Shown piece after piece: positions 5,501 through 42,999 of a stretch of DNA of 48,161 bases. Under the pieces are notes generated by a model. It had not been told where the DNA came from. It made no database searches and saw only the letters and a program-made list of their open reading frames with translations. The stretch lies in NCBI GenBank assembly GCA_004431415.1, contig QPMI01000320.1:1-48161 (forward strand), read 5' to 3'. The position numbers and the translations under genes are program-made. Position 1 is the first letter of the stretch; the number at the start of each line of letters is the position of its first letter. The DNA comes from Cyanophora paradoxa CCMP329. Its lineage: Eukaryota > Plantae > Glaucophyta.

Positions 5501-7188
5501 GCCGCGCCCTCGCGCCCGGCGAGGTAGCAGTGGTACGCCTGGCAGTAGGCGTCCCGCCGGATGGCCTCCAGGACGACGTGCTTCCACGCGAAGCGCCGCG
5601 TGCAGTAGCGCACGTAGTGCACCGCCACCCGCCCTGCCGTCCCTCAGGCCCCGGGGGCCGGCGAGGGGGCGGCGGGGCGGACCGGCGTAGTGCCACCAGG
5701 CGCGGGGGTCGTGGCGGGGCCGGGCGCGGGGCCGGAGGCCGAGGCACTTGCGGGACTTGCCGTAGTTGCGGAGGTGCGCGGCGAGCGCGAGGGCATCGTC
5801 GTACTGCTTGCGCTGCAGCCGCAGCTCCACGCGCTCCTCCACGCGGGCCGTCAGCTCGACCGTTGGGCGCGCGTGGCTCGTCTTCCGCAGCGCCACCTCC
5901 GCCTCCACGCTCAGCGGCCGCATCACGTACGCGTGCCCCGGCGTGAAGCCCCGCCGCGGCATCTGCCCCCCCCCCCGGTCAGCGGCGCGGCTGCAGCGGC
6001 GCCCGTCCGGCCGCACCCACGCCCCGAGCATGTCCTCGAGCACGTCCGGGGCCCTGCCGCCTTGTCAGCGGGGCCGTGCTGCTGGGGGAGCGGGGCTGGG
6101 GGTGGGGGCGGGGGCGGGCCAGTTGCGGTTGGGGCTGTCGGAGTCCCAGTAGACGGAGACGGTGGAGAGGGCGAGCCGCTGCGGTGCGTCGCGCGGGGCG
6201 GGCGCACGCGCGGGGCGCGGGCGGGGCGGGCCTTGGTGACGTAGCGTTCGCGGTGGAGGAGGCTGCTCTCCTGCGGCTTCGAGCTCGTCTCCAGCGTCAG
6301 CGCCTCCACCGTCACGCCGAGCGCCCACGGGTGCTGCCCGCCGTCAGCGCGGCGCGCGGGGCGGGGCGGGGCGGCGGGCGGGGGCGGGCACCCAGGTGTT
6401 GGAGAAGTCGTCCTCGAAGCGGACGTGGACGTTTGTGACGCTGACGCGCACGTTGAAGAGGATGTCCGAGAGCACGCTCGGCTTGAACGGCTTCTCCTCC
6501 TCCGCTGCCGCCCCGCCCCGCTCGCCCTCCCCCGAGCGCCGGCGGGGCGGGCCGGGGCGGGGCGGGGCGGACGCTTCTTGGGGGCCCCGGCGTCGTCGCC
6601 GTCGTAGAGGGCCTTGACCTTGCGCGCGTGCTTGATGATCGCCCGCGCCTTCAGCGCCCGGTCCCGCTCCACGAACTGCCGCCCCCGCCTCGGGCCCCGC
6701 CCCCCCCCGCAAAGCCACGCGCCCCGCAGCGCCCAGCGCCCGCACCTTGTCCATGTTCCACTGCGTGCCGAGCACGACGCAGACGCGGTCCACGTGGACA
6801 GTCGTCGGCTTGCTCTTCAGGTTCGTCCACGGGATGTCGATGCGCACCTCCCCGATGTGCCCTGCGCACACAGAGCCGTCGCTCGGGCGACGCGAGCTCG
6901 AGCGGGCGCGCGCCGCCCAAGACCAGGCCGCACCGCCCTTGATGATGATGGGCAGGTTGTACGAGTCCAGCGCCTCGGGATTGAGCTCGACATTCGTCAA
7001 ACGTATGTCACCTGCAGCGGCGGCACGCCCTCTCAACATCGAACGCGCGACGCGGCTCCCAGGCGGCTCCGACAGGCGGCGAGCGCGCACGCACCTGAGA
7101 GCAGGCCTATGTCGACGTTGCTCGAGTCGAAGTTCTTCAGGAAGCGGGCGGCGAACTTGGAGACGAGGTCGGCTGCGAGTTTGTTCAT
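2504..7188 (-). CDS. Short VPS13-like bridge lipid-transfer protein (chorein-N at N-terminus, PH domain near C-terminus), multi-exon
   Basis: MNKLAADLVSKFAARFLKNFDSSNVDIGLLS|GDIRLTNVELNPEALDSYNLPIIIKG|GHIGEVRIDIPWTNLKSKPTTVHVDRV, then NVRVSVTNVHVRFED, GVTVEALTL and RPRARPRHDPRAWWHYA, all VPS13 N-terminal motifs. A downstream PH start reads PLKMGYVERRARFGLLSIWRRRWLVL. The internal exon chain is only partly verified. Confidence 0.8.
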
Positions 7189-7651
7189 TGCGCTTCGCGG
7201 GTCCGGCCCTGGGTTCGGTGCACGCGGCGGCCGTCGAGTGCTCTACGACTGCGCTCAGCAGCTGCGGCGTGGGCAGCGGCCTGGGTCCCGTCGGTCACGC
7301 TGCTGCTGTCACGCCACGCGAACCAGGTTCAAACCTCGCCGAGCGGCTAGCGCATGTAGCGCGATGCTCTCGGTTCTCAAGCGCGCTATGAGCGCTCTCG
7401 TCGATCTCCCCTCCGGCTGGCCTGCAGCTGCGCGCGGGCGAACTTGGCCCGCGGTTTCCAAAGGAAACCTTCCTGTCGAGGGTCGAACTTGGAACTTGGC
7501 AGCGGCAGGGCGACGCCGCGGCGAGCTGCTGGAGGACGCTGCGTCGTATCGCTCGGTAGCCTTGCACGGAATCCGCCCGGCGCGGCGGCCACCGCGGCGC
7601 TAGCCCAACTCTTCAAATTCCAACTATACCCCGCCGGAGGGGGGGGCAAGC

Positions 7652-7870
7652 CTTAACTGCCCGAATCCGGGCACTTAAGCGGAAAAAAAGGCTTAAGTGG
7701 CCGGATCCGGGCACTTAAGGCCAGAAAGCGGCCTGACGGATTCGAACCCGCGTCCTGCGAGACGGGCTTAACTGCCCGGATCCGGGCACTTAAGCGTAAA
7801 AAAAGGCTAAAGTGGCCAGATCCGGGCACTCAAGGCTGGCAACGGCCTCTTGGATTCGAACCAGCGTCCT
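7652..7870 (-). repeat. Two tandem 115-bp units, each with two 28-bp imperfect palindromes, an A7/T7 tract and a Pol III B-box
   Basis: Palindromes with consensus CTTAAGTGCCCGGATCCGGGCACTTAAG at 7652-7679, 7692-7719, 7767-7794 and 7807-7834. GGATTCGAACC (minus strand GGTTCGAATCC) at 7738-7748 and 7852-7862. Confidence 0.85.
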
Positions 7871-8278
7871 CAGCGCGCGCTAGCTATCGCGAACGCAATT
7901 GCAAGCGCCCGGCCGGCGTCGGCGTACGCGTCCGCGACGACTCCGCGTCCGCGTCTCACGTGCACAGCCTTGCAGCTTGCTATAGAGGCAGTCACTGCAG
8001 CTGGCGGCTCCACGGCGGCCGCGACCGCGGGACGGGCATGCGCGCTATCTTGGTTTGGCTCTACCGAACTTCAAAAGCTGACGAACGCGTCTGACGCGCG
8101 GCGCAGTGCGGCAGGTCGTGGGCACGTCTCTGACTCAGTGAGAGCAGGCCAGTGGGCTCTCTGCGCACTGCGGCATGCAAGCTCTCCCGGAGTCCCACTC
8201 CGTGCGCATGTAGCTCGCGGGGCTCAGCGGCTCGCTGCGGAGCGCAGATCTCACCCACGCGCGCGGACGACGGCCGCC

Positions 8279-8386
8279 CGGCCGGGTGCGAGGGGCTAGA
8301 CAGGCCGGTAATACTAGCGTTCTAATGCGCCAATCCTATGAAGTATGTATATGCCTTGTGTGTATCGAGTGCGGGGCGCAGGGGGC
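8279..8386 (+). repeat. Left inverted repeat of the element
   Basis: CGGCCGGGTGCGAGGGGCTAGACAGGCCGGTAA... matches the reverse complement of 21768-21875, with 32 of the first 33 bases identical. Confidence 0.85.
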
Positions 8387-9039
8387 GTAAATATGCAAGC
8401 AGGAGTGGTGTATGGCATGCTGTACATCTATTGCAAATGAGCGGGAGCTCGCCAGCAGTGGTCATCCCATATACGTCGCGGCGTCCGCGTGCTGCTCAGC
8501 ACTGGGGCGCTTACGGCGGGTCTAGCGAGCAAGGCGTGCATGCGCGGCGCATATGCGTTCTTTTGCAGCCACAAGCTGGGGCCCGGCGCGGTCCCCGTCA
8601 GCTGCGGGAGCTGGCGAGAACTGATACCCCCCGCCACCCCCCCCCCCTCGGCAAGCCGGCAGCATTCGTCCGGGAGCTCGGTAGGCAGAAGGTGCGCTCA
8701 TGCATCATGCATCGAAGCAGTTTCCAGCCAACCAGCCTCAGCGAGCGACACAGTTGGCTGTTGCGCCGCGAGCGCGCGAGCGCTGTGCGCGAGCGGCGAG
8801 CTCGAGCGCGCGAGCGGAGCCACGTGCTCACAGGTGGCAGTTGCGCCGGGCCACGCGGACGTCGACTGCGGGCAAGCGCGAGCTCGAGGCCCAGTGTGAG
8901 AACCCGCGCGCGACCGGCACCCGCGCAATGCTCCCGCCGATCGCGATATGGCTTCCGTTGCGCGAGCGCGCAACGCGCTTGCAATTGCGCTCCCGGGCGC
9001 CGGCCCGCGCGCTCGCGCGCTGCCCAAATCTCGCGCATC

Positions 9040-11350
9040 GAGGCCCGCCGAGGGCCCTACACGCGCGCGTCGACGGATAGAGATTCTAAATATGGCCTGG
9101 GTCTGACCGCCGCGCGCGCAGGGACCCACCCCCTGCCCCCGCCGCCCCCTGAACGCTGTACCCCTGGTGCGAGCCCCGGGCCGCGCTCCCCGCCAGCCGA
9201 TGGCCCGGCGAGGGCCCTACAAGCGGGCGTCGACGGATAGAGATTCTAAATATGGCCTGGGTCTGACCGCCGCGCGCGCAGGGAACCACCCCCCTCCCCC
9301 CGCCGCCCCCTGAACGCTGTACCCCTGGTGCGAGCCCCGGGCCGCGCTCCCCGCCAGCCGATGGCCCGGCGAGGGCCCTACAAGCGCGCGTCGACGGATA
9401 GCGATTCTAAATATGGCCTGGGTCTGACCGCTGCGCGCGCAGGGACCCCCCCCTGCCCCCGCCGCCCCCTGAACCCGGTACCCCTGGTGCGAGCCCCGGG
9501 CCGCGCTCCCCGCCAGCCGATGGCCCGGCGAGGGCCCTACACGCGCGCGTCGACGGATAGAGATTCTAAATATGGCCTGGGTCTGACCGCCGCGCGCGCA
9601 GGGACCCTCCCCCCCTCCCCCCGCCGACCCCTGAACGCTGTACCCCTGGTGCGAGCCCCGGGCCGCGCTCCCCGCCAGCCGATGGCCCGGCGAGGGCCCT
9701 ACACGCGCGCGTCGACGGATAGCGATTCTAAATATGGCCTGGGTCTGACCGCCGCGCGCGCAGGGACCCTCCCCCTGCCCCCGCCGCCCCCTGAACACTG
9801 TACCCCTGGTGCGAGCCCCGGGCCGCGCTCCCCGCCAGCCGATGGCCCGGCGAGGGCCCTACAAGCGGGCGTCGACGGATAGCGATTCTAAATATGGCCT
9901 GGGTCTGACCGCCGCGCGCGCAGGGACCCTCCCCCCCTGCCCCCGCCGCCCCCTGAACGCTGTACCCCTGGTGCGAGCCCCGGGCCGCGCTCCCCGCCAG
10001 CCGATGGCCCGGCGAGGGCCCTACACGCGGGCGTCGACGGATAAAGATTCTAAATATGGCCTGGGTCTGACCGCCGCGCGCGCAGGGACCCTCCCCCCCT
10101 GCCCCCGCCGCCCCCTGAACCCGGTACCCCTGGTGCGAGCCCCGGGCCGCGCTCCCCGCCAGCCGATGGCCCGGCGAGGGCCCTACACGCGCGCGTCGAC
10201 GGATAGAGATTCTAAATATGGCCTGGGTCTGACCGCCGCGCGCGCAGGGAACCACCCCCTGCCTTCGCCGCCCCCTGAACCCGGTACCCCTGGTGCGAGC
10301 CCCGGGCCGCGCTCCCCGCCAGCCGATGGCCCGGCGAGGGCCCTACAAGCGCGCGTCGACGGATAAAGATTCTAAATATGGCCTGGGTCTGACCGCCGCG
10401 CGCGCAGGGACCCTCCCCCCTGCCCCCGCCGCCCCCTGAACGCTGTACCCCTGGTGCGAGCCCCGGGCCGCGCTCCCCGCCAGCCGATGGCCCGGCGAGG
10501 GCCCTACACGCGCGCGTCGACGGATAGAGATTCTAAATATGGCCTGGGTCTGACCGCCGCGCGCGCAGGGAACCACCCCCTGCCTTCGCCGCCCCCTGAA
10601 CGCTGTACCCCTGGTGCGAGCCCCGGGCCGCGCTCCCCGCCAGCCGATGGCCCGGCGAGGGCCCTACACGCGCGCGTCGACGGATAAAGATTCTAAATAT
10701 GGCCTGGGTCTGACCGCCGCGCGCGCAGGGAACCACCCCCTGCCCCCGCCGCCCCCTGAACGCTGTACCCCTGGTGCGAGCCCCGGGCCGCGCTCCCCGC
10801 CAGCCGATGGCCCGGCGAGGGCCCTACAAGCGCGCGTCGACGGATAAAGATTCTAAATATGGCCTGGGTCTGACCGCCGCGCGCGCAGGGACCCTCCCCC
10901 CCGCCCCCGCCGCCCCCTGAACGCTGTACCCCTGGTGCGAGCCCCGGCCGCGCTCCCCGCCAGCCGATGGCCCGGCGAGGGCCCTACACGCGCGCGTCGA
11001 CGGATAGCGATTCTAAATATGGCCTGGGTCTGACCGCCGCGCGCGCAGGGACCCTCCCCCCTGCCCCGCCGACCCGAACGCTGTACCCCTGGTGCGAGCC
11101 CCGGGCCGCGCTCCCCGCCAGCCGATGGCCCGGCGAGGGCCCTACACGCGCGCGTCGACGGATAGCGATTCTAAATATGGCCTGGGTCTGACCGCCGCGC
11201 GCGCAGGGACCCTCCCCCCCTGCCCCCGCCGACCCCGAACGCTGTACCCCTGGTGCGAGCCCCGGGCCGCGCTCCCCGCCAGCCGATGGCCCGGCGAGGG
11301 CCCTACACGCGCGCGTCGACGGATAGAGATTCTAAATATGGCCTGGGTCT
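9040..11350 (+). repeat. Tandem array A, ~160-bp unit, ~14.5 copies
   Basis: 15 occurrences of ATTCTAAATATGG spaced ~160 bp apart. Units are near-identical apart from a few substitutions and C-tract length. Confidence 0.97.
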
Positions 11351-11363
11351 GGGGGCGCGAGAC

Positions 11364-13468
11364 GGTTGGGGGGCGGCCGGGGGGCAGGGGGCGGGCTCAC
11401 TGCGGCCGGGAATTCGATGTCAGGATTAAAGCGACGGCGACGGCGCGCGGGGCCCGCCGCTAGCGCGCCCGAGGGGCCGAGCCTCGGGGGGGACCCGGCC
11501 GGCAGCGCCCAAGGGGGTACCTGTTTGCGGGGCGGCCGGGGGCAGGGGCGGGCTCACTGCGGCCGGGAATTCGATGTCAGGATTAAAGCGACGGCGACGG
11601 CGCGCGGGGCCCGCCGCTCGCGCGCCCGAGGGGCCGAGCCTCGGGGGGGACCCCGGCCGGCAGCGCCCAAGGGGGGTACCTGGTTGCGGGGCGGCCGGGG
11701 GGCAGGGGGCGGGCTCACTGCGGCCGGGAATTCGATGTCAGGATTAAAGCGACGGCGACGGCGCGCGGGGCCCGCCGCTAGCGCGCCCGAGGGGCCGAGC
11801 CTAGGGGGGGACCCCGGCCGGCAGCGCCCAAGGGGGTACCTGGTTGCGGGGCGGCCGGGGGGCAGGGGGCGGGCTCACTGCGGCCGGGAATTCGATGTCA
11901 GGATTAAAGCGACGGCGACGGCGCGCGGGGCCCGCCGCTAGCGCGCCCGAGGGGCCGAGCCTCGGGGGGGACCCCGGCCGGCAGCGCCCAAGGGGGGTAC
12001 CTGGTTGGGGGGCGGCCGGGGGGCAGGGGGCGGGCTCACTGCGGCCGGGAATTCGATGTCAGGATTAAAGCGACGGCGACGGCGCGCGGGGCCCGCCGCT
12101 AGCGCGCCCGAGGGGCCGAGCCTCGGGGGGGACCCCGGCCGGCAGCGCCCAAGGGGGGTACCTGGTTGGGGGGCGGCCGGGGGGCAGGGGGCGGGCTCAC
12201 TGCGGCCGGGAATTCGATGTCAGGATTAAAGCGACGGCGACGGCGCGCGGGGCCCGCCGCTAGCGCGCCCGAGGGGCCGAGCCTGGGGGGGACCCCGGCC
12301 GGCAGCGCCCAAGGGGGGTACCTGGTTGGGGGGCGGCCGGGGGGCAGGGGGCGGGCTCACTGCGGCCGGGAATTCGATGTCAGGATTAAAGCGACGGCGA
12401 CGGCGCGCGGGGCCCGCCGCTAGCGCGCCCGAGGGGCCGAGCCTCGGGGGGGACCCCGGCCGGCAGCGCCCAAGGGGGGTACCTGGTTGCGGGGCGGCCG
12501 GGGGGCAGGGGGCGGGCTCACTGCGGCCGGGAATTCGATGTCAGGATTAAAGCGACGGCGACGGCGCGCGGGGCCCGCCGCTAGCGCGCCCGAGGGGCCG
12601 AGCCTCGGGGGGACCCCGGCCGGCAGCGCCCAAGGGGGTACCTGGTTGGGGGGCGGCCGGGGGCAGGGGCGGGCTCACTGCGGCCGGGAATTCGATGTCA
12701 GGATTAAAGCGACGGCGACGGCGCGCGGGGCCCGCCGCTAGCGCGCCCGAGGGGCCGAGCCTAGGGGGGACCCCGGCCGGCAGCGCCCAAGGGGGGTACC
12801 TGGTTGCGGGGCGGCCGGGGGGCAGGGGGCGGGCTCACTGCGGCCGGGAATTCGATGTCAGGATTAAAGCGACGGCGACGGCGCGCGGGGCCCGCCGCTA
12901 GCGCGCCCGAGGGGCCGAGCCTAGGGGGGGACCCCGGCCGGCAGCGCCCAAGGGGGGTACCTGGTTGCGGGGCGGCCGGGGGGCAGGGGGCGGGCTCACT
13001 GCGGCCGGGAATTCGATGTCAGGATTAAAGCGACGGCGACGGCGCGCGGGGCCCGCCGCTAGCGCGCCCGAGGGGCCGAGCCTCGGGGGGGACCCCGGCC
13101 GGCAGCGCCCAAGGGGGGTACCTGGTTGGGGGCGGCCGGGGGGCAGGGGGCGGGCTCACTGCGGCCGGGAATTCGATGTCAGGATTAAAGCGACGGCGAC
13201 GGCGCGCGGGGCCCGCCGCTAGCGCGCCCGAGGGGCCGAGCCTAGGGGGGACCCCGGCCGGCAGCGCCCAAGGGGGGTACCTGGTTGCGGGGCGGCCGGG
13301 GGGCAGGGGGCGGGCTCACTGCGGCCGGGAATTCGATGTCAGGATTAAAGCGACGGCGACGGCGCGCGGGGCCCGCCGCTAGCGCGCCCGAGGGGCCGAG
13401 CCTCGGGGGGGACCCCGGCCGGCAGCGCCCAAGGGGGGTACCTGGTTGCGGGGCGGCCGGGGGGCAGG
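11364..13468 (-). repeat. Tandem array B, ~160-bp unit, ~13 copies
   Basis: 13 occurrences of GAATTCGATGTCAGGATTAAAG spaced ~160 bp apart. The reverse complement is related to array A. Confidence 0.97.
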
Positions 13469-14651
13469 GAGAGGGGGGCGGGCCCGCTGAGGATGGGTTT
13501 TTAAGAGAAGGAAGCAAGGAAAGTATGCAATTAGTACCGGCATGCGCTTTTGTTCGCCGGTTGATCGCGTTGCGCCGTGAAAAGGCTCGCTTCTCTGTTC
13601 AGCTGCTGTGTGGCCAATTGGCCACACGCCACAGAGAGCGATTGGATTAGCGCTGAGAGCAAGTTAGGCAGTTTATGTAGCTTCAAAGTAAGGCGACTCA
13701 CAGTGTTAGATGAGCTGCTAAGTGTCCGGCTCTCGGTTGCAAGTTGCAGTTGCAGCTGCGCGATATGCATATGCTGCGCATGCTGTGTGGTCAAATGACC
13801 ACGCGTACGTGCACACGCGAGCGAGAGGGCGGCAAATGCGCGCGTGTAGCTAATATAGATTCCTTATGCTGTATACTTGTTCTAGCTCTATAGTGCGCTT
13901 GCCGCTCCGCGTCCTATAGCTGCTAATCATAACGAGCTCGCGATTTTCAAGCAGAGCTGCTCACGATCACATGCGTGCGGGCGGCCGCACAGCTGCTCAC
14001 GTGCGGTGCTAGCGCTGCGCCTGCAGAGTCCGGCGGTCTGCGGGCGCAGAGTGACGTCGTGCTTGCTTGCTGCAATGCGTACCCCCCTTGCTGGCCGCCT
14101 GTCGACGTCGTCACTCTAAGCGGCGGGCTAACTAGCTGAAACGTTGCTTTTTGGCCTGCGCCTCATGTCGCAGCTGCTTGCGGCGCCCAGAACTGCGTGC
14201 TAGCGCTTGTGCGTGGTTGCAAGGTCGACCATACGGAGCCCAGTTCATAGACGCCGCCTGGCTGCAAAGATATCGGGTCTAGTCGTGTAATGCTCCATGC
14301 TTTTGCACAAACGAAGCCCCTCAGACGCCGCGAACTCCTTTTTTAAAATCATACAGTTCTGGGACATCTGGAAAAGAGGGTTTCCGGCCTGTCATACCCC
14401 TGATAGCCGGGTAACAGGGGTCCTACAGGCCGGAAACTCTTCAGACTGTATGTTCCAGATGTATATAGGTCCAGAAACAGGCTATGGCCGTAGACGAGGC
14501 GCGTTCTGAGCGCGTTTATTTGACCATCTAGATGCGCAAGCACTGCACGCAAAGGCTGGGCGGTCGCTGCGCACCTCATTCGAGCAGTGCGCCAGGCTGT
14601 CATATATGCGGGGGAGGGTACACGCGCACGTGGAGCATCGCGCAGCGCGAG

Positions 14652-15649
14652 ATGACGTCGAACGCGGGCGGGAACGAGAGCGTTAGCGATGGTCTCGTGC
14701 GCGTAAAGGTTGGCGAAGAGATCAGGAGTATCCGCTCGTCGAAACTGAAGGAGCAGCTACCCGACATCGTAGAAGCGGTGCTCCAGATGCAGCTGTGGAT
14801 GCAGACAGCGATCTTCGAAGAAGTCGACGAGCGCGCGAATTCGAGAGAGACATTCTCGCTGAAGCGCATGCCTGATTTCAAGTGGAAGACTGGCACAAAT
14901 GAGAGCCCGAGCAAAATCTACTACGCCATCGTCAGCTGCGGAAGTGCGACGCGTTTTCGATGCTTTTCGATCAATCGCGAACGCAGTCTGAAGCGCGAGC
15001 GCAGAGCCGGAGCAGGGGAGCGCGTCGCAGACAGCTGCTGGCGGGGCGAATGCACATGCCTCGCCGCCGCCTTCAGCTGCGGCCGCGGCCGCTGCAGCTG
15101 GCCATGGGGCATCCGGCGTTACGCCCGAACTTCTGGACATGCTCAAGAACTTGCACACTCCCGCCGGGTCAGGCAAGTTGCACCAAGTGACTGCCGAAAG
15201 CTTAAGCGCTGCTTTAGATCTGATGTGTGCGCACGCCAGGTGGAACTGGCGTGAACTACGGGATGGGGGCGATCCTCAATCGGATCAACGCGTCGAGGGA
15301 CCCGGGCGCCCCGATGACGATGGAGCAGCTGCGGGAGCTGGCGGCCAGCCTAGGTGGCGGTGGGGGGGGCTCGAGCCCGTCCAACACCAACCCCTTCACC
15401 GAGGTGCTGAACGTGTGTGCTACGCCACGCTTGCAGTAACGCGGGCCCCCTCCATCGCAGGCCCCTGCGCGGGGAACTACGGTCCCCCCTGCCCCAATGT
15501 CCCAGAGGGGAGGCACCCAGTCGAAATCAGACAGCTTCGGCAGCGGAGCCCATGTAAGGAACGTCTCGTGGAGTTTCATGAATGCAAATGGTATCGCACG
15601 AATCGATCCACTCTCGATGAAGCTCTCTCCACCTATCCAGGGTGCGTAA
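14652..15649 (+). CDS. Second gene of the element, unknown function (spliced, ~220 aa)
   Basis: MTSNAGG...VRVKVGEEIRSIRSSKLKEQLPDIVEAV...KIYYAI|TAAGGA...LLDMLKNLHTPAGS|GGTGVNYGMGAILNRIN...NPFTE|APARG...GAH|GA*. The introns are phase-compatible and one has a GC donor. Confidence 0.5.
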
Positions 15650-15999
15650 AGTCGAACTCTTGAGCTACTCACTCGAAATTAAACGATCGCAGTTTCGACA
15701 GTAGACAACGAGTCCCTGGTCTACGGGCCGCAATTTACGGGCACGATTGCAAACACGATCGGTATCCTGTTCTCAAGACATCGAGAGACAAGCTCGAAGC
15801 CTCTGCAGCCTGGAGAACCGTCGTACCCAGGTGCAGGACATGCAAGCGAAGATCATGCATCAAGCGATTGCATGTTAATCGAAGCTCCAGATTTCTTGCT
15901 GGAAGGTGGCGTCCTTGCAACTCTAGTTGTCGGCTGGATCGAGCGCAAGAAAATCGACAACAAGCATCATTCGTACGTCGACTTTTTCGAACCGGTGCG

Positions 16000-16160
16000 T
16001 CTCAACGCATAAATGCAATTGTGCAACACATGAGCACCAACGCTTGCGCAACGCTTGCGTTGCAATTGTGTAACACATGAGCGACAACGCTTGCGTAACG
16101 CTTGCGTTGAACTTGCGTAACGCTAGCGTTGACACTTGCGTAACGCTCGCGTAGAACGCG
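16000..16160 (+). repeat. Degenerate 11-bp minisatellite (AACGCTTGCGT-like)
   Basis: Repeated caacgcttgcg/taacgcttgcg units. Confidence 0.75.
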
Positions 16161-16539
16161 ACGCTGCGGGAGCTCCGCCAAATAGCGTTTGAGAATGAGG
16201 TGGGCAAGGGCCAGCAGCAGGTGCGCAATAGCGTTTGAGAATGAGGTGGTCTGCATGGGGATCAAAAATTGCTGCGAAACAGAAAACGATTATCAGGGGA
16301 TCAAAAATTGCTGCTGCTGCTGTGTAATGAACTATTACTCCTTCGGTGTACTTACGTATAGGCTCCCAGTGTTCGCGCCGGGCGGTCCGCACCGTGGCAC
16401 CCTCGAGTGTCGCCTCGGCCCCGCGCTTGGCCGCCTCCGCCGGTCTTGCGAGCTGGCCAGCTCTTGCAAGCGCATCAGCGGCAAACCGAGCGCTCGAATT
16501 GCGAATAACAATTGCGCTCGGCACCCGGCCAGCAGACTA

Positions 16540-17085
16540 GTTCGCGTGCTGCGCACGACGTGCGCCCCGCGTTGCGCCGCCGCCTGCAGCTGCGTCCCCG
16601 CCGCCTGCCACCCGGCCAGCAGTCCAGCTCGGTTGCTGGGCACGGCGCGCCGCTGCACACCGCTTGCCGCGCGTGCTAGTCCGCTTAGCCGCCCGCTGTA
16701 CACGTGCGCCAGCGGGCCCGCCACCGCCTGGCCCCGCCCCCAGTCGCCCCAGCCCCGCCCCCAGGGCGCGGCGGCGCGGGGCGGGAGGGCGCACGGGCTT
16801 CTTCTTCGTGGCGGGGGTCGTGTCGATGGCGTCGGGGGCCGTCCACGGCCGCCCAGTCGTCCCCGTCGCCAACGCCGTCCCTGCCCCGCCCGCCCGCCCG
16901 CGTGAGGGGCGAGGGCGGGGCGAGGGGGCGGCCGGGCTGCCGGGCACCCTCGGGGCTCGGCGAGGGGAGGGCGCGCGGGGACTCCGGCTCGGGGCTGATG
17001 CCGTGCTCCTGGGGCGCGGGGAGGCGGGCCGGGGTCAGGGCGCCCTGGGAAGGGCGGCGCGAGGGCGGGGGGCGGCGGGGCGCAC
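16540..17085 (-). pseudogene. Captured host-type gene fragment with three introns
   Basis: Minus-strand GT-AG introns at 16728-16794, 16881-16947 and 17009-17085 have host-like C-rich 5' ends. GC content is far higher than in the flanks. Confidence 0.55.
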
Positions 17086-17088
17086 GGT

Positions 17089-17349
17089 GTGGACGAGGTG
17101 GATATCGAAATTCAAGACCTTGTCTACCAGATGCGCGGCGGGAGCGAGCAGCGCGCCAGCCGCATGGCTCTGCGGGCGCTCGAGGCGGCCGGCCGCCTCA
17201 CCATGCTCTCGCAGGACGGCTCTCTTCAGGACCGGCGCCGCTGGCTGCCGCTCACCCCCATGGCCGACTTCCGCCCCGACCCCCTTCAGAAGGCCTGGAT
17301 CGCCTATGTTTACGGCGAGCCCTCTGCAGACAGCACCATCATCTTTTAG
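17089..17349 (+). pseudogene. 5'-truncated coding fragment (DEVDIEIQDLVYQ...WIAYVYGEPSADSTIIF*)
   Basis: GC3-rich codons, a stop at 17349 and an AT-rich 3'UTR-like tract after it. No credible start or acceptor upstream. Confidence 0.45.
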
Positions 17350-17654
17350 CCAGCTGTTCAGGGTTAGCGGTAGGCCGTGCGAACACAGTTGATGCGCAGC
17401 GTTTTTTCGCTCCAGAACAATCTTTCTTATATAATTATACAGTGCGCTGAATCTGGCCTTTCATTGAGCCTTTTCTTTATTCGGTTTGATCGCAGCGTCT
17501 GCTTAATGGGCCTTTTCTATTTTTTATAATCATATACACTCTGTGTCTATCTTTACACTTCAACCTGCCGCGCGCGCTGGGCCGGGGTCGATCTAAATCT
17601 GCCCCGTGCATGTTCGTGCCACTACGACTCTTTCATTAGATCCCGGTTCCCCCC

Positions 17655-18170
17655 TTGCACCCCCGGCGCGAGAATCGCGGCCGGGCCCCTAGTATATGCT
17701 TCGGGTGCACAACCACGTCGGGCAAAAGATCTGGTGCTACCAATTGTCCCTGCCAGTCTAATGGTCAGTATCCATATGTTATCTATCTTCAAATTAAAAT
17801 AGAATTGCGTTCTGATGCATGTGTTCCAGATCCAAAGAGCCCGGCTGCGAAAAAGAAGCAGCGGGCCAAGCAGAATTCGAACCCTGCCGAAGTCAATCGA
17901 CCTCCTGCAGCTGTACCACAGGGAAGCAGCGCGCAAGAAGAAGCAGCGCTCCCTCCTGCTCCTCCTCTCCCCATTGATATCGACAGCGTAGCTTCGTCAC
18001 CGATATCGATATCGTCTGGCACACCGCCTGCAGCTGCAGCTCAGCTCCCATCTCGGGAGAGAAGACAGTTAGAGACAACTCTGGTAGATCAAGAGCCCCC
18101 GACGGGGAAGCGCAGCTGCAGGCGCAAGGACACCGTGTCTGCGGACAAAGCCTTGAACTTAAAGAAGTAG
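17655..18170 (+). CDS. Possible Cys-cluster plus basic/low-complexity ORF fragment
   Basis: CFGCTTTSGKRSGATNCPC followed by AKKKQRAK and KRSCRRK basic patches. Gene structure unresolved. Confidence 0.3.
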   Translation: MHPRRENRGRAPSICFGCTTTSGKRSGATNCPCQSNGQYPYVIYLQIKIELRSDACVPDPKSPAAKKKQRAKQNSNPAEVNRPPAAVPQGSSAQEEAALPPAPPLPIDIDSVASSPISISSGTPPAAAAQLPSRERRQLETTLVDQEPPTGKRSCRRKDTVSADKALNLKK

Positions 18171-18719
18171 TTCTTCAGAAACGTAGATGTTTGTGTGCTT
18201 GTGGATGCATAAACAAGTGAGTGTGTTTGGAAGACCATCTCAGGCCTAGGACTGGACCAGTGCACGTCGAGATACTTGGCGGCACTGTCAGGGCACGGCG
18301 GGGCATGGAGGGGCATGGCTTGGGCACTAGCGGGGCATGGCGGGGCATGACTGGGGCACTAGGCGGCACCTGGCCGCAATTAAACTCGCCAACAAGCAAT
18401 GCCCAGTAAATGAGTGATGTATGAGGCATGTTTTAAGCCTTTATATGCAATATGCATGCTGTTAAAAATTGGTAATGAAGTCACCTACCGAGGTTAGGTT
18501 TCATGATGACAGTTTCGGGTGAGGTCTAGTTGTCAGGTTTGTGAGCTCGTCAGACGTTTCGGCGGCCTTTTCCGGGATAGATTAATTTGCGAGCCCCAAC
18601 CTTTTTATATATCCTGAAAGCTCTTTTTATTGTCGTTCTCATGATACCCTCTGACAGAATATAACTACTTTCTATCCAAAGATATTCAGTTTACAATGGA
18701 ACCTGCTGTGGGTGGCACA

Positions 18720-19150
18720 TGGCACCCTCGTCTTGCTCTGGCCATCCTCCTGGCGCCCAGCGCCCCCGGCTCATCTTATAGAATTTGAATCCCAGTGTAA
18801 TAATTGTTCTTTGGCAGTGCTTCGATTCAGGCTTGGGGCCCGCCCTGGGGTGAATCGAAAGGCCGCGGTTCCGTGGGCTCATCCCCTCAGGTGGCCCCCC
18901 CCGCTACCTTGAGGCGGACCTCGTGCCTCGCACCCGGCGACCCCAGCTCATCTTATAGATTATGGATCCTTGTTTGTAGCATAATGTTTCTCGACGGCCC
19001 GATTCAGGCGTGGGGCCCACCATGGGGTGACAGGCAGCGGTTCCGCAGGCCCAACCCCTCATGTGGCCCCCCTGATTACCTCGAGGCAGACCTCGTGCCT
19101 CGCACCCGGCGCACCCAACTTATCGCATAGATTCTAAATCCCTGTATAAC
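18720..19150. repeat. Degenerate ~175-bp tandem repeat, ~2.5 copies
   Basis: Recurring GCTCATCTTATAGA, CGATTCAGGC.TGGGGCCC, GTGGCCCCCC and CCTCGTGCCTCGCACCCGGCG at ~172-178 bp spacing. Confidence 0.8.
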
Positions 19151-19488
19151 AAATGTAAGCTTCCGCTTCCTTTCATTAAGCATGCGTTGAAACCTCCAAC
19201 CTAGCACACAACGCATCCGCAACGCATGCGTTACGCAATCCCAACGCATGTGTTGCGGATTGCGTAACACAAATGTATGTGCTCTAAGGACCATGGAAGG
19301 ACATCAGCAATGACCTTGGTCTGCGATTAGTATTATCTATGTGCCCAGGCATGTGCCCCACGTGCTGCCCCTGGTGTATATGCGCTTCCATGTCCAGATA
19401 TTTATCTTGTTGAATTCTACTAAGTACACTGCATTTCGAACTAGTGCATTACATCTGGATCTACCGGATCTACCAGAACTAAATTTAC

Positions 19489-21499
19489 TCATACATGAGA
19501 TTCTTCATGAGATGGGAACGATGCGTCGAAAAAAGCATCTCGAGTCGCCCTGGCCATGGATCGGGAATGGAACCAGTCAGAAACCGGATTTATTATACAA
19601 GCTGGAGAGACTGCGGCTATTCTCAATATTTATCGCACCTGAATTGCGGAGCAACAGGATCCCGAAGGCGGGGATCCGAGTCTGTCCCCACAATCTTGGA
19701 TCTCGGGTTCTTTTCGAAATGAAGCTCCAGCATCTCCTCGTACGATGGAAGACGGATAAGCAGAGGCCGAAGGCGGTTAAGACCTGGCCTTTCGAGCCTG
19801 CGAATTCCAAGTTTAGCCGGTTTTAAGCGCACCATAATTATACATATGCATTTCAATTACCATTTGTTGGGACGGCCCCTTTGACCCGTCTCCTTGCTCC
19901 CTGTGTTGACATGCTCGTTCCAGCTGACCCGCTCAAGCTCAAGCCCGAATTCGAGCAGGAAGATGGCCGCTTTCGACATGGAGAAGTACATCAGAGGGTC
20001 GTTCCTGCGCAGTGGCATGTGAGATTCTGAACACTATTTACATTGCAGATAATTTCGCAGCTCGATCCGCACATCCGGTACATGCCCATCTTGAAAAGCA
20101 TCTCTGCAGCTCGAGTGAGGTGCGCTGCAGCGTTCATGTTTGGTTGCCTGTCGTAACGCAATTGTCAGCGCAATTTTGCAACGCAAGTGCAACGCAAGTG
20201 TTACGCAATTGGCAACGCAAGTGCAACGCAAGTGCAACGCAAGTGTTGCTCAAGCGTTGTTGCAAGCGTTGGTCGTTGCGTTGCACAAGCGTTGCAGATT
20301 TCGTAGCGCCGTCTTAGGTTGCATTCTCATATATATATGTAATCTAAATCATTATAATTACCATAGCCATCTTCGTATTTTAAAACGTTTAATTTTCCAA
20401 GCGGGACTGCCGCCACGACCGCACCGCCAGTACCGCTCAGCGACGACGTTTCGGAAGGACTCCCCTTCCCACACGGGCTCCCTGTCGTAGTGTAGGTTGT
20501 ACTGGGCTCGCTGAGCAGAAAGGTCAATGGGCTGAATGATGCCGTGCTCAGCAACCCATGCTGGGTCGGCATTCAGTAGATCGAGAGCTGCATTTGTCTT
20601 CTCAATCACATATGCCTGTGAAAATTCAAGTAAGACTGCAGAAATGTGTGGGGGTGCGACCGTCGGACTGGACATGCGGCGCACGTGCGCGGTACGAAGA
20701 AGCCTGTTCTCGCACCCTGAATCGCAGCTGAGCTGTTCGGGGACCCCGTAATTGCGGAGTGCCGAACTGCAAGTGACCATGGGGCATCAATATTAATTTT
20801 AAGAGCAACAGTACTAGTTTGTAATGGCCATGGGGCGGTGGATGCGCACTAGTAGATCTCAAGCCCCTGCTTTGTAGAACGCGACTGGAAGACTCGAGTG
20901 GCCATGACGATGGAGGACGAGTTGTCGATGGCGTTCTCAATCCACACGCCCAGCCACGTCAGCATCTTCTCATTCTGTGCGAGCGCGTTCGCGCGACGTC
21001 AGTTCATGCTTCACATTCCGCGCGCACCGCGCCCACAGACGCTTGCCTGGTCGATTCCCATGCTCCATCCGACGTAGGGACCGAAGTAGGGGGCGCGCGG
21101 AATCACCCGCCGGCTCCGCTTGCCGAACTGCAGGAGGCGCTGGTCGCGCCCTTTTGGATCGACCTTCGCTAGAGCTTTTTTGATGCGCTTTTGTCCAGCA
21201 AAAAGCTTCCCGTGATTCGCTGCCCGCAGCGTCCCATACACAGATTTGCCGCAGTTGCCGCCGCGAAGCTCCGAGGCTGCGCGCACGTGCTTCTCCAATT
21301 CGGATTTCGAAACCCAATGCCAAGTTGACAAGCCTAACTGCCGCAGGTAGGAACGCAGTGTCGTCCGAGACAGCTTAATGGGCTGCTCCGGATCCGTTCG
21401 CAAAGCTATCAGCATCGCTGGAACGCGAAGCTTCTGAACATTTACGAGCTCGCGAAGTCGAGAAGCTAAATGCTCGTCCAGCCCGCTGGGGCGCACCAT
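19489..21499 (-). CDS. DDE (integrase-core, IS3/IS481-related, IS3EU-like) transposase, at least 8 exons
   Basis: Spliced product: HTH-like LSRTTLRSYLRQLGL, QKRIKKALAKVDPKG, PYFGPYVGWSMGIDQ|NEKM..GVWIENAIDNSS, YGVPEQLSCDSGCEN, GESFRNVVAERYWR, SWNEH, GRPNKW. Putative triad: D(GIDQ), D(CDSG), E(AERYW). The 3' end is approximate. Confidence 0.88.
20150..20295 (-). repeat. 11-bp minisatellite (GCAACGCAAGT) inside a transposase intron
   Basis: Repeated gcaacgcaagt units. The reverse complement resembles the 16000-16160 repeat. Confidence 0.8.
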
Positions 21500-21767
21500 G
21501 CTCTCGCAGCTAGAAGAGTGGGGGGTACGTACCGAACTGACGCGCACTCGTCCTGCTTCGCGCCTGCACTGGCATGCACTACGATGCGTATAGACCTTGC
21601 GCCGTCCCTGGGGCCGCACAGAATCGACGTGCGCCACCCCTGCGTGCAGTGCCGCCCGCCCCATGCTAGCTACATCTATATGCTGAACGCGACTTGCACG
21701 GCCGCGTCCCTGAGCGTGCGCTGCGGCCATTTCACATGCACTAGACCACATTCATCGCTTCTGAGGT

Positions 21768-21875
21768 GCCCCCGTCGCCCCGCTATGCGCAGACACAAGG
21801 CACATGCATATCATATACTTCTGGCGCTATAGAACTCTCTAGTTACCGGCCTGTCTACCCCCTCGCACCCGGCCG
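21768..21875 (-). repeat. Right inverted repeat of the element
   Basis: The reverse complement aligns without gaps to 8279-8386. It lies ~270 bp upstream of the transposase ATG. Confidence 0.85.
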
Positions 21876-22571
21876 TGATGGGCGATTCAAATGATTGTCC
21901 AAGAGCATCGTTGAGATGCCCCGCACGGCGAGCGCGAAGATGCCGCAGTGCAAAGATCTCCGATCAGTGTGCAGTGCGTTTCGCGCGGCCGCGCGCCACC
22001 GTGGCACCCCCGCCGGGCCTGCGCCTGAGGCCTGCAGCTGACCAAGTTGCTAGGCGCGTGCCGCAGTCCGACGGTCTGCGAGAAGAGCTATCCTCCGGGC
22101 GGGCGCGAGCTGCGACCAAAGCGGGAGCGTCACGATGAAGCGGGCGGGCGGCGATGCCCTCCGGAGCCTCGGAGGGCGAACTTCGGAAGGCGGAGGGCGG
22201 GGCGCGCGCGCTCCGCTTGAATACGGGAGGGCGGCAGACCGGTCGGCTGCCGCTGGCGCCAGGGCCTGTGCTTTGCAGGGGCGGGCGGGACTCGCTGCTC
22301 GCTCCACCCGCGCGCGCCTCGGCCCTCCGATCTGTGGACCACTTGCTGTGCATGCTCGCATGCTGCGGTGCGCTCTTGCTGAAGCTCTGAGCCACCGTGG
22401 GCACAGGCGCTGCATGTGGCGGCGCGGCTCGTGCGGCGGCGGGCGGCAGCTCGGTTTGCTTGATTGAGCGGGGGCGTGCAGCGGGAGGCTGCGCGGCTCG
22501 GTGGGCGGGGCGGAGCGCGGCGGGCAGCGGCGCGGCTCGGCGCGCCTCTGGCCGGGCGGGGGGGTGGGGGG

Positions 22572-33951: not shown

Positions 33952-35797
33952 ATGGACGCCGAGGCAGCTATTGCCAAGTTCAAAGGTGCGCGTACGCGCG
34001 CCTTCCCGGCGCGATCCGTTCGGCTCATGCACGGCTTTCCCAGCGCGCATCCTGAAGAAGAAAGCGTCGGAGAGTGAATCCGATCGCACGCGCGCCCCGC
34101 AGCGGCAGACTCCGCTCGAGCCTCCCAGCGTCCCGAGCGCCAGCGCGAGCTCTGCGCCGCTGCTCAACGATGACGCGCTCCTTCGCGCCGCGTTCGGGCA
34201 CGAGCGTTCGGGCACGAACTCGTCCGCTTCAGGGCCCAGCAAAGGCCGCGAGGTGCACCAGGAGGCGATGAGCCGCTTCCGGCGGCCGGCGCGCGAGGAC
34301 AGTCTCCTCGCCGACGTGCTTGACCATCGCGGCGGTCTCGCTGCGGGGCTCGCGGCGACAGTCGGGCCTGCGAAGCGGGGCCTCGCGGACCCCCTCCTCG
34401 ACTCGTCGGGCATCTTTGTGAGGGCTCCCCGGGCCCCCGCATTCTCTCGTGCCGCGCCGCCGACGCCGGGCGCAGAAGAAGGGGAAGAGGTCGATGGGGG
34501 CGAAGGAGGCGGTGGAGTCTCTGTCGCGCGCCGCCTTCTCCGAGCTCGACTTCTTCCTCTGCGGCCGCGGCCCCGGCCCGGGCCCCGCCTCCACCCCGCC
34601 CCCTCCCGGCGCTCCGCGCGCAGCCTCCCCCGAGCAGCAGCCGCATCCGGGCGGCCCGGTCTCCTCCCAAGCGCCCGCCGCCAAGAGCGCACCCGAGGGC
34701 GCGGGGCCGGCGTCCTCCAACACCGGTACAGGCGCTCTTCTGCAGCTGTGCCCTGTCGCGCGCGCGCCTGCTCCTGCGTGCTGAGGGCGCGTGGCGCTGG
34801 CGCAGGCGTGCGGGGGAGCGGGCCGGCGCCGGCTCCGGGACGGGAGGCCGGCGGGGTGCACGAGAGGGCGGAGTCGCCCGAGCGGCCTCCCGCCGCCTCC
34901 GAAGGCGAGCACGCCGCCGCGTGCGCCCCCCGTCCCCGCCCCCGGCGGCGCCGCGCGACGCCCCGGGCAGGGCGGGGCGGGGGTGGAGACGCTCTCGCCG
35001 GAGTGGGTCCCCGCGACGCGCCTCGCGCAGCAGGCCGCCGACAGCGTCTGCCTCCGCCAGCTCCTCCGCGATGGTCCGGATCCCCGCCTGCCCGCCCCGC
35101 CCGGCCCACCCCCGCCGCCCCGGAGCGACGCGTACGAGCTCGAGGCGGGCGCGCGGGGCAGCGGAGGCGGCGGGGGCGGGCCTGCAGGAGGAGTGTGCGG
35201 CGGGGCGCCGGGCGGGGAGATGGTCGCGCAGGCCGCCCGCGTGCGCCCCCACGCGCGGCCCGCCCCCGCCGCCGGGGCGACGCTGGGCGCAGGCGGCGGA
35301 GCTGCTCTCCGCGATGGTCGAGTTGACCTTCTGCGAGGCGCGCCCCGCCGGCCCCGCCCGCCCTATCCCCGCCTCTGAGACGCGCCGCAGGGGGCGGAGG
35401 GGGCGGAGGAGGCGCTCGAGGAGGGGTTTGAGGAGGAGGAGGCGGGGCGCGGGGAGGAGCCCTTTGAGCGCGACTGGGGCGGGGCGGGGGCGGAGGGGGC
35501 GGAGGGGTGGGCCTCGGGCCGCCGGGGAGGCGCCCCGCGAGCCCGCCTTCCCTGTTCTTGCAGCCGGCCCGGGGCCCTCCCCTGGCCCCTTTCCCCAGCC
35601 CCGCCCTCCCCCCGCCCCCCGCCCGCCCCGGCCCCGCCCGGAGCTTCAGCGCCCACGCGGGGGCCTCCTGGAGGCCGGCGCCGGGCCGAGGGCCCCGGGG
35701 AGCGGGCGGCGGGCCCGAGTGGCCCCCGCTGGAGTCCCCGCGCCGCGGCCACTCCGCCCCGAAGCTCTCCCCGCAGCGTTTCCTCCGCTCATCATGA
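33952..35797 (+). CDS. Protein of unknown function, multi-exon
   Basis: MDAEAAIAKFK|ARILKKKASES...DSSGIF|KKGKRSMGAKEAVESLSRAAFSELDFFL...AAELLSAMVELTFCE|GAEGAEEALEE... The last exon needs a homopolymer correction suggested by the duplicate copy. Confidence 0.55.
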
Positions 35798-36949
35798 CCC
35801 GCCCCCTCGCTTAAGCTTCTTCCCGCGCACCCGAGCCCACCCCGACTCTAATCTAGACCTAGAATCACCTGAACCTGTGCATGTGTGCGACTCATGATCA
35901 GAACCCGGGACCAATCATTGAATTGCAACATATGCGTCCGACGGTCTCTTCAAGTCTTCAAGGCTTGCCAAGTTGAGCTCCAGTTTCAAGCTTCGAGCCT
36001 CGCAAGCACTGCGGCACTGCAGCAGGGTTTTCCGTATCCGAGCGGCCTCGAGCTCGCCAAGCTTAAGAGTCGGAATCAGAATTCTTTAAGGCTTTAGCGC
36101 TTGCCGTACTATGGTAGCCTAGTAGCCTAGTAGCGCAGATTAAAGCCCTCAAGGCTTTAATTTTCAAGCTACTCATCATTCGGCATGCCATGATGATCAG
36201 TGGCTTCGAATTCGAGCCGGCGCCGGCGCCTCGGCCACTGGGCCACTTGTCCGGAAAGCATGATCGTGATCATGAGGCCCTGCAGCTGAGGCCCTGAGGG
36301 TGCTCCGGAACTTCGGAAGATCCGGTCGGAGAGTGTTCGAATTCTTCTTAACTCATTGAAGGCTCCGAGCCGCTGAGCCTCCGAGGCTCCAAGCGGTTCA
36401 ACGGTTCACCGGCCCAGGTTCAAGGCTCCAAACTTGAAACTTGATGTGGCAAGGCAGGCCCTGAGGCCCTGAGGTTGTGATCATGACACTCACTGGGTCA
36501 GTGACTGTGGCAATATCGATGTGGGCCGGGCAATGATTCACAACCCGTTGAACCTCCCAACCGTACACCTCCAGTGTCTGGTCCCCCGACTCTGATCATG
36601 AGCTTCCCCTCACTCGACTTTCTGAGCCCGGAAGCTTTTACCTACGTATACGTATACCAGGCCTGAGGCATGGTATACGCAAGCTATTTTTAAGCCCACA
36701 GCCCTCAGGGCCTGCAGCTGCGCCCGCCATGTCGCATGCTCAGTGCCAGTGATACGATGTGTCGTACCTTAACATACAGAATGGTTTATATTAATTATAA
36801 GACTATAGAGCTCGAGCTCGAGCTCGAGTGCCTTCCTGGAGGCCCTAGCTTGCTCTATAGCTAAGCTAGGTAAAGCTTGCAATCAAGCTGCAGCTCCATC
36901 AGCCGTTAACATTCGAATTTACATATCGTACTTCCCTAGGCCTCTCTCA

Positions 36950-37402
36950 TCCTCAGGTAGTCACTCCTCCCTTGAGTAGAATCTCATCTGCATTGCAGCA
37001 TTCGACCAACTGTTTACACATCAGAGCTCCATCCGGTCCGATGTCCAGAAGGCTGAGTCCCTCGAAGGCTGATAGCCATTTGTCTTGGTGTGTGTGAATC
37101 CATCATGTCACAGCAAAGAGTTATCATGATCAGGACCATGACTCCCCCTGGCCAGCATGAGGAAGAGGCCCACATTAAGATGTCTGTGGTTGCTTTCTCT
37201 GTCTGTATATGTGAGCACAAGACCGCAGGGGCATTCAAGGTAGAATGTGTAGCTGTGTTGTAGCTGGTTCACTGTCGATTGTGCATGGGGCCTTCAATAC
37301 AAACAGTTGTTGCGTGCTGCCTAATCATGTTTCGGTTCACTGTCGATTGTGCATGGGGCCTTCAATACAAACAGTTGTTGCGTGCTGCCTAATCATGTTT
37401 CG
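36950..37402 (+). mobile_element. Degenerate LINE endonuclease fragment with a 68-bp tandem duplication
   Basis: Inverted, diverged copy of ~38985-39440. An exact 68-bp duplication starts at 37266 and 37334. Confidence 0.55.
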
Positions 37403-38949
37403 ATTTGTAGAACAGGCCTTCAAGCACATCGAAGACATCGTCTACGACTGGGACCCTTAGAGACCCATGTGCTTTCTGCAATAGCTGTTTAGAGCGATAT
37501 GGCGGGAGGGCACCGGAGCGATCATTCAGACCTGTTTTAACTTCTGCATTTGATTGCCGGTTGCTTCGCCGCCATCCAGATTAGCCACATGTGTCGCAAG
37601 GCCAAACTGCGCGGGAGGAAAAGCGTTCTTTGAAGGGATGTGCCTCTGCTTCGAATGAGAACGCCACCTCTTCGACCGGGGCTGGACTGACAGCTTCTTG
37701 TCTTCTAGTCTTGAAAAGGCCCTCGAGCATGTCAAAGGCATCGTCTATGATTGGGACCCGTAGAGATACATTCGCACTCTGCGTTGGAGACACGATACAA
37801 TGGCACTTTCAGATAGATGGTGCAGGGGGCACGGTGAAAGCTCTCATTCAAACCTTTTCCTGGGCATGAGCTCCCCCCGGGCCATCCACGTAAGCCGGCT
37901 GAGCGACGCAGCTGCGCATGCCCACCGAATGCATGTCGAAGTTGCTGGTTGTTTGACCGCTTGCAAGGCGGGCTTTCTTGCAAGGCGGCACACCAGGCTT
38001 GACGTATTTGCTGTTATGAGCTCGGCTGCTCCTACTATGCACGTTTATTGCGCTACGGGCGCCGAAAGAAAACAACTTGCCGATCTTCGTACCCCTTTCC
38101 CAGGGGGGTGAATAGGGGGATCGCCGCAAATCATTTAATCATTCATCATTAAAGCCGCGTCCGGCGCGTCGTTGTCCTCGGTGGGATCAAAATCCAGCAT
38201 GCATATGGCCGCGCAAGTCTCCCCATCTTCGCGACCGGTTCGCATATAGCGCAGATAGTTGAAATCGCGACTGGGACGGCGGAGGGGGCGGGCTCCACAT
38301 CAACTCTCTTGCGCAGCTGCAGATAGGCGGCGCCACCGTGGCCACCGCTGGTGTGGATGAGTTCGACATGAGGACGGAATTGAACAATCTGAAGAAGGTT
38401 CGTGGTGGAAGCGCCTCCCTTGTTTTCGGCCCTGATGGACCTGTTCAGAAAGTGAACGATATCGTCCAGGTAATGAGTGCTTGCTTTTTCCGAAGTTCAT
38501 TCGAAGGTTATAATTACTAATTGTGGTATAGATGAATCGCAGGCGGCGCATACTCCGAGTTGTCACTACAATCATCATTGTGGCCGTCGAACTGTCCACT
38601 CGAAAGACTGCTTACTCCCTCGCTGCCATTCCATTCTCCTACTAATTTGGTAGTACTAGTGGAGTTGTACGGTGTCCCACCCACTTTTAAACTCCCAACT
38701 ATCTATTTTGCCTCGTACATTTCGTGGCCTGCTATTCCTGGTGCCATGTTGTTGCCAACGCTGGGCAAAGGCTACGCTCTGTGTGCAACAGAGGGCTCTA
38801 GGTCGTGCGCCACAATACATGGGAGATTCTACTCGAGGGAGGGAAGTGACGACGAGGGCAAGAGAGGGATACGCGACTGAACTCTAGCTATTACTGGATA
38901 TTGCAAGCAAGGGGAAGAAGAAGAGTATGCTAAGACCTGTCCAAGCCAG

Positions 38950-40950: not shown

Positions 40951-41399
40951 TCGACAGCTCGCTGCGCATGCGAGCTGCATGGATCTGTTAGCAACTCGAG
41001 CTAGCTTAGTCTAGTACTAGGCTAGCTAGCTAATTCACCAACCCTACTACTAGGCTAGCCCACGAGGGCGCATCTGCCTCCGCGCCCTCCAGCCGCTCTG
41101 CGCAACTTCTCTACACCCTGTACCCCCCTGGATCAGGCGACTCAGTGGCGAGGCACGCAGCAGCACAGCAGCAGCAGCGCGGAGCGTGGTGCGCACTTAT
41201 TCTTATCTTATGCGTCGTTCTGAGACTCTCCTGCCCTCGGGCACCTACAATCTGCCGCGAGGCACCTATCCCTGTCTTTTTGGCACCTATCCCTGCAGCC
41301 TCGCTTGTTCTATGTGCCAATGCGCATCACATGACGCGTTTTCCGCTTGCGTCACCGCGCGCACCTGATCGCTACTCTGCGTCGGCAGTTTTGACCGTT

Positions 41400-42990: not shown

Positions 42991-42999
42991 TTTAATCAC

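Follow-up and report, generated by a model that had tools for sequence, protein, structure and literature searches.

Transposons of the IS3EU superfamily are described in two publications as elements with TA..TA and sometimes TG..CA termini and a 6-base-pair (bp) target duplication (PMC10045372, PMC6839031). GingerRoot elements belong to the same lineage. Their description reports TA..TA and, in a minority, TG..CA ends, 100-150-bp inverted repeats, lengths of 3.9-12.9 kb, G+C-rich 6-bp targets and carried gene fragments (PMC6839031). Degenerate copies of the element Styx are mobilised in trans, and donors are kept after transposition (PMC8232023, PMC10853768). Extra genes are known from Styx and from fungal IS3EU. 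For P element and hobo, tandem insertion is favoured at best-matching targets (10.1101/158386). Here we analyzed the segment 8279-21875 in a 48,161-nt stretch of the Cyanophora paradoxa CCMP329 genome (contig QPMI01000320.1), called the window below. By its protein motifs the segment appears to belong to the IS3EU/GingerRoot lineage. We give about an even chance to the reading that two IS3EU-type units from a single family, each with asymmetric ends, lie here as mirror images joined at their TA ends.

A first-pass annotation of the window had proposed one giant IS3EU-like element with inverted repeats of 108 bp lying 13.6 kb apart, 4.4 kb of tandem arrays, an intact, intron-split transposase with a D-D-E triad and a convergent second gene. 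All of these parts were recovered. The inverted repeat (8279-8386 / 21768-21875; E value 1.5e-14) is 75-76% alike, and 32 of its outermost 33 nt are the same. The tip-to-tip joint and the nested Helitron-like insert described below are features absent from that annotation.

Four ends and a 6-bp spacer

A 26-bp end motif was found at 8287 (plus strand, TG), 14405 (minus, TA), 14412 (plus, TA) and 21867 (minus, TG), and nowhere else in the window. The ends and their flanks are as follows.

8277-8286, unstranded: left flank, palindrome CCCGGCCGGG, whose last 6 bp, GCCGGG, are the left target duplication of unit A
8287-8312, plus strand: outer left end of unit A, TG type; subterminal likeness to the right end reaches about 8400
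14380-14405, minus strand: inner end, TA type, closing unit A
14406-14411, unstranded: 6-bp spacer GCCGGG between the abutting TA ends, same as 8281-8286
14412-14437, plus strand: inner end, TA type, opening unit B
21842-21867, minus strand: outer right end of unit B, TG type (...CA on the plus strand), 368 bp upstream of the transposase ATG
21868-21877, unstranded: right flank CCCGGCCGTG; begins with the spacer's reverse complement (6 bp) and agrees directly with the left flank at 9/10

The two inner ends form a palindrome (14360-14460, z = -6.6). They abut across the 6-bp spacer GCCGGG. The same word stands directly before the left end, and its reverse complement, CCCGGC, directly after the right end. 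The outer pair aligns at 24 of 26 positions and the inner pair at 22 of 26; beyond the 26-bp core, longer likeness is found within each end type. Since each end resembles its counterpart of the same type more closely than the other end of its unit, unit A can be regarded as the mirror image of unit B. The partners are diverged (about 75% alike near the ends) and show no likeness to each other past the end regions.

TA..TA and sometimes TG..CA ends with a 6-bp duplication are the family rule (PMC10045372, PMC6839031), and by this rule the segment splits into two units. Unit A (8287-14405; 6,119 bp; TG..TA) has no genes and contains only satellites, and unit B (14412-21867; 7,456 bp; TA..CA) carries two convergent genes. 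The termini of the whole segment are TG..CA, and 2 of the 4 ends are TA. Unit A is bordered on both sides by an exact 6-bp direct repeat (host frequency 0.002 per site). The best explanation is that unit B is the autonomous type and unit A a gene-less relative with two inverted satellite arrays.

The termini most likely read TG/TA, and the sequence CGGCCG, named as terminus in the first-pass annotation, would then be flank. A related element from another public sample (L001) has this end in common only from TGCGAGGGG inward, upstream of its transposase; outside the TG it has CT where the segment has GG. The contig of sequencing run X1, which carries about three copies, breaks exactly at 21867, after CA, although a graph break can have other causes. 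The inner ends lie in the same register. In run X19 a second left end shows the same 10-bp flank followed by different DNA, which points to a target preference or to bases travelling with the element. A 4-bp repeat occurs only as a by-product of the palindrome, and CCC/CAC at 8277/21877 is without duplication.

Transposase of unit B

19489-21499, minus strand: IS3EU-type transposase, 429 amino acids (aa), 8 exons, 7 introns, ATG at 21499, stop at 19489
21499-21047, 20974-20850, 20766-20685, 20615-20425, minus strand: exons 1-4
20147-20073, 20004-19861, 19797-19639, 19549-19489, minus strand: exons 5-8
20152-20263, unstranded: CAACGC-type array, 11-bp unit, in intron 4

The transposase is intact, spliced and probably expressed. 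Its reading frame has no internal stop over 429 aa and contains the catalytic triad D150 (at 21052), D208 (at 20723) and E280 (at 20438), with a D-to-E spacing of 71 aa. Intron 1 is of the GC-AG type. Two probable RNA runs, each from a different study, have contigs in which all seven introns are spliced out, with 0 mismatches in the listed exon pieces; in the other two runs compared with the segment the transposase introns were not skipped. By depth (331 vs 111-113, run X3), about three transposase copies appear to be present, so the RNA may stem from another copy with identical exons.

The core motifs around the triad follow the IS3EU rows and not the IS481EU rows in the alignment of PMC10045372, as judged by eye. 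Database searches were run exon by exon; the joined protein served only in checking the frame and in a pairwise comparison. The exons matched the sister-family protein P0002 with E values of 1e-12, 6e-8 and 7e-16, and the identity is 36% over 350 aa. This sister family (P0002, P0004-P0008) consists of near-identical proteins that are annotated as host genes at about seven C. paradoxa loci, and it was probably active recently. P0002 lies above the Pfam rva_4 cut-off with a weak match to Clr5, and its Atlas neighbours are all rva_4; for the exons of the transposase itself, the E value against rva_4 is no better than 0.07. The IS3EU-type assignment of the first-pass annotation is thus upheld by the core motifs and by the sister family. 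Compared with the sister family, the transposase is shorter by about 100 aa, and no relic of a lost tail was found downstream of the gene.

Its nearest named relatives are in the same C. paradoxa proteome. L001 (275-1139) is a closer relative with 78% aa identity; it has a TG end, keeps the GC-AG first intron and lies in a different flank. The ratio of nonsynonymous to synonymous substitution (dN/dS) between the two is about 0.16. Neither a PDB sequence search nor a fold search at E 0.001 gave a match, the latter with single-sequence folds of low predicted confidence (pLDDT 38 and 37). P0003 was rejected as a relative, as it is a laminin G/EGF protein.

Second gene and interior of unit B

14532-16238, plus strand: gene 2, 7 exons, orphan; published model starts at 14652
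16014-16157, unstranded: CAACGC-type array, 11-bp unit, in gene 2 intron 6
16262-17692, plus strand: nested, high-copy Helitron-like fragment with 3' hairpin and CTAG before T; putative 5' end A|TC
17693-17763 and 17830-18170, plus strand: two orphan 3' exons (within 17693-18170)
18749-19145, unstranded: tandem repeat, 172-177-bp unit, 2.3 copies, holding a 13-mer of right end plus flank

Gene 2 converges with the transposase and is the same as the published model tig00001343_g8328.t1 (376 aa). The two genes start 120-370 bp inside the ends of unit B. The two-gene layout proposed earlier holds for this 7.5-kb unit rather than for the whole 13.6 kb. Intron 6 (15995-16154) is spliced in X19. In the published model the stop falls within a 46-bp duplication, and the gene is probably truncated or damaged in the present copy. 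It has no Pfam or Atlas match and no recognisable domain; by eye, its last exons look ubiquitin-like. At 16181-16249 a 23-bp direct repeat lies 46 bp apart, and if 16200-16245 were removed as a GT-AG intron, gene 2 would stay in frame, a pattern like that of intron gain by duplication.

In each of the two genes a CAACGC-type array closely precedes a 3' splice site, and both arrays have the same sense orientation; a third cluster is located between the genes (19200-19265). The motif density is 4-7 per kb in the unit B genes compared with 0.1-0.4 outside.

The Helitron-like fragment splits the second gene of unit B in the present copy. Its depth is 26-88 times that of the transposase, loose ends occur at 17693-4, and other copies have different flanks. 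It carries the tail of an uncharacterised open reading frame (17100-17348) and is internally deleted at 17100. At 16261-16314 the word A|TCAAAAATTGCTGC is doubled (putative starts 16262 and 16301), possibly as stacked Helitron starts. A contig of another copy appears to link the exons at 17693-18170 in frame to upstream sequence lacking in the window. These exons are the severed 3' part of an element gene and may be part of a third gene. The gene fragments reported earlier as cargo thus exist as Helitron cargo and as this severed piece. The 177-bp repeat shows no homology to the satellites of unit A (z about 0). The 13-mer in it occurs at 18926-18938 and 19098-19110 and equals the final 7 bp of the right end together with 6 bp of its flank.

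Satellite arrays of unit A

9042-11351, unstranded: satellite array 1, 160-bp unit, 14.4 copies, units 96% alike
11364-13469, unstranded: satellite array 2, 161-bp unit, 13.2 copies, units 98% alike

The arrays, 4.4 kb in total, are homologous but diverged, and they are inverted relative to each other (score 107 vs 83 +/- 6; 1 of 300 shuffles).

Origin of the joint and alternative explanations

By analogy with what is known of the family, the transposase would use an N-terminal helix-turn-helix region to bind the 26-bp ends, nick at the terminal TA/CA and join target DNA with a 6-bp stagger. It may prefer G+C palindromes like CCCGGCCGGG. A second insertion, or an attack by the TA end of unit B, could have hit the 6 bp beside the TA end of the other unit, which would leave one shared spacer between the units as in P-element double insertions. 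The right flank of unit B would then be its own target read from the opposite strand, and the left and right host DNA may stem from two neighbouring insertion sites.

Several observations speak against a pair of mirror-image units. The weak point is the inverted right flank of unit B: its flanks GCCGGG / CCCGGC form an inverted and not a direct repeat, whereas in P element and hobo dimers all three duplications should be direct (10.1101/158386). A perfect, centred 6-bp repeat CGGCCG (8285/21869) frames the whole segment if its ends are set two bases outward, which makes them GG..CC. The outer ends match each other better (24/26) than do the ends within either unit (18/26). L001 has a flank without the supposed target, and the target preference is based on three ends. 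Neither a solo A nor a solo B copy was seen. In favour of the pair, the end motif has exactly four matches in the window and none in 100 shuffles even with 2 mismatches, though this count overstates its rarity because the motif was built from these same sequences.

Since the flank is palindromic, other registers give repeats too, namely CGGCCG with GG..CC ends and a direct repeat of 9/10 over 10 bp at the outer ends 8287/21867. Both are used by an explanation that we consider possible, though on the unlikely side: units A and B form one composite transposon moving on its outer ends, and the inner joint is a fossil of assembly. Its duplication would be CGGCCG (6 bp) with ends two bases longer, or the 10-bp word with one later change. 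Besides the two repeats, the likeness of the outer ends across 108 bp and the same 10-bp flank at the second left end in X19 agree with it. However, L001 has CT rather than GG outside TG, the X1 contig stops at 21867 and not at 21869 or later, and neither GG..CC ends nor 10-bp duplications are reported for IS3EU/GingerRoot in PMC10045372 and PMC6839031. The same evidence from L001 and X1 places the end at TG/CA and weighs against one simple giant element with CGGCCG (or CCC/CAC) termini, no duplication and an inner palindrome serving as regulatory or binding site. This we regard as very improbable, as the inner motifs begin with TA in exact register 6 bp apart, and a duplication is lacking at both the CGGCCG and the CCC/CAC registers. 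In its favour, the inverted match extends to 8279/21875, the 13-mer spanning end and flank recurs inside at 18926 and 19098, and the left end in X19 has the same bases.

A further explanation, which we think quite unlikely, takes the inner joint as an IS3-like end-to-end junction, formed when one TA end attacked at a point 6 bp beyond the other (figure-eight, copy-out/paste-in). Either two inverted copies fused and the intervening DNA was lost, or a TA..TA element circularised and re-entered the genome at the TG/CA joint, giving a permuted element. The spacer in the IS3, IS30 and IS256 families is donor flank, typically of duplication length, and here the 6 bp equal the flank; fusion of inverted copies would account for all three flank words with no mutation needed, and Styx donors are kept. 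But the same spacer is expected from an ordinary double insertion, IS30 end-targeting yields left-right junctions and no like-end junctions, and no circle or junction read was seen. More generally, the eukaryotic IS3EU lineage might retain the bacterial IS3 end-to-end chemistry, i.e., attack 6 bp outside another end, and this would lead to tip-to-tip four-ended composites, circles, permuted re-entry and palindromic G+C target guidance. We consider this idea improbable.

The single giant cargo-carrying element of the first-pass annotation is not supported in that form: four ends are present, they most likely read TG/TA, and the size comes from 4.4 kb of satellite and the 1.4-kb nested Helitron fragment. 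Nor is the segment an undescribed system.

Age, other copies and genomic setting

In the genome, 8-bp scars are common. None was found in 3,415 bp of noncoding element DNA (introns and Helitron left out) compared with 14 in 2,400 bp of flanks (p = 4e-6). Since the scars are absent inside and dense in both flanks, the segment is younger than the DNA around it. It is not brand new, however, as the transposase introns have a few 8-bp scars that are lacking in the majority copy. A search of metagenome contigs with the end pattern found nothing, and one viral hit was judged to be chance. No transposase relatives were found in metagenome, viral or bacterial contigs.

The segment sits between host genes. 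It lies upstream of one of them, a VPS13-like gene (5600-7188, minus strand) that starts 1.1 kb to its left. In the left flank, a repeat of about 115 bp occurs in 2 copies, each with an A-run (7646-7870); it has internal inverted symmetry and resembles a miniature inverted-repeat transposable element. The region 37006-43974 contains nested inverted repeats (37130-37246 / 39059-39175, 84%, and 37006-37061 / 39387-39442) and an 880-bp direct repeat (39321-40192 / 42129-42990, 84%), which are likely other mobile elements. A near-identical direct repeat of about 800 bp (34642-35938 / 44633-45407, 98%) brackets the 36-44.6 kb region; its first copy is split by about 500 bp, and it is either long-terminal-repeat-like or segmental. 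No tRNA genes or Rfam families were found.

Significance

IS3EU ranks among the least studied superfamilies of eukaryotic transposons, and its range is extended here to glaucophytes. An intact, spliced, low-copy transposase beside a natural end-to-end joint, with a spacer of duplication length and in a culturable alga, makes cut-and-paste versus IS3-like copy-out directly testable. The locus suggests asymmetric TG/TA ends, and a sequence-specific target is possible. It also indicates that 'giant' elements can arise from two units, satellites and nested inserts instead of cargo capture.

Comparison with known systems

Our literature search found no paper on such transposons in Cyanophora, on abutted ends in IS3EU or settling the IS3EU mechanism. 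IS481EU was rejected as a class, as the core motifs follow the IS3EU rows, and of its duplications of about 4, 15 or 25 bp only a 4-bp repeat appears here, as a by-product of the palindrome. CACTA/CMC (C(A/C)C termini, 2-3-bp duplication) was also rejected, since CCC/CAC is without duplication and the transposase is rva_4-type.

The nested insert shares with non-autonomous Helitrons the hairpin, CTAG, insertion before T, high copy number and a captured gene piece; it differs in its putative 5' end and in the internal deletion at 17100. The joint resembles P element and hobo double-insertion dimers (10.1101/158386) in that two elements have exactly one target duplication between them, and head-to-head forms exist there, whereas the partners here are diverged and different in content. 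The end-end junctions of IS30, IS3 and IS256 (PMC9333248, PMC7780238) likewise have abutted ends and a short flank-derived spacer. They differ in being bacterial and, for IS30, left-right only, while here only the genomic joint was found.

Styx / REP9 of Zymoseptoria (PMC8232023, PMC10853768) is an active IS3EU-related element of 7.9 kb, similar in its 6-bp duplication and extra genes; in contrast, it is fungal and has one pair of 43-bp inverted repeats and four genes. With GingerRoot, the segment shares lineage, end types, long inverted repeats, size, G+C-rich targets and gene fragments, and sizes to 13 kb are already reported there; in the accessible part of that description, GingerRoot is without a strict target sequence, an inner end pair or a satellite-only partner (PMC6839031).

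Closest is IS3EU itself (PMC10045372). Integrase-like DDE core motifs, two proteins, terminal inverted repeats, TA ends, a first catalytic D within 100-300 aa of the N-terminus (here residue 150) and the lack of an HHCC motif (none by eye; weak helix-turn-helix match) were all found. The 6-bp duplication is exact for unit A, inverted for unit B and present for the whole segment only with GG..CC ends. Unlike the strict TA..TA rule for complete IS3EU elements, each unit has one TG/CA and one TA end, and further differences are the 71-aa D-to-E spacing, the domainless second gene, the like-end tip-to-tip joint and the glaucophyte host.

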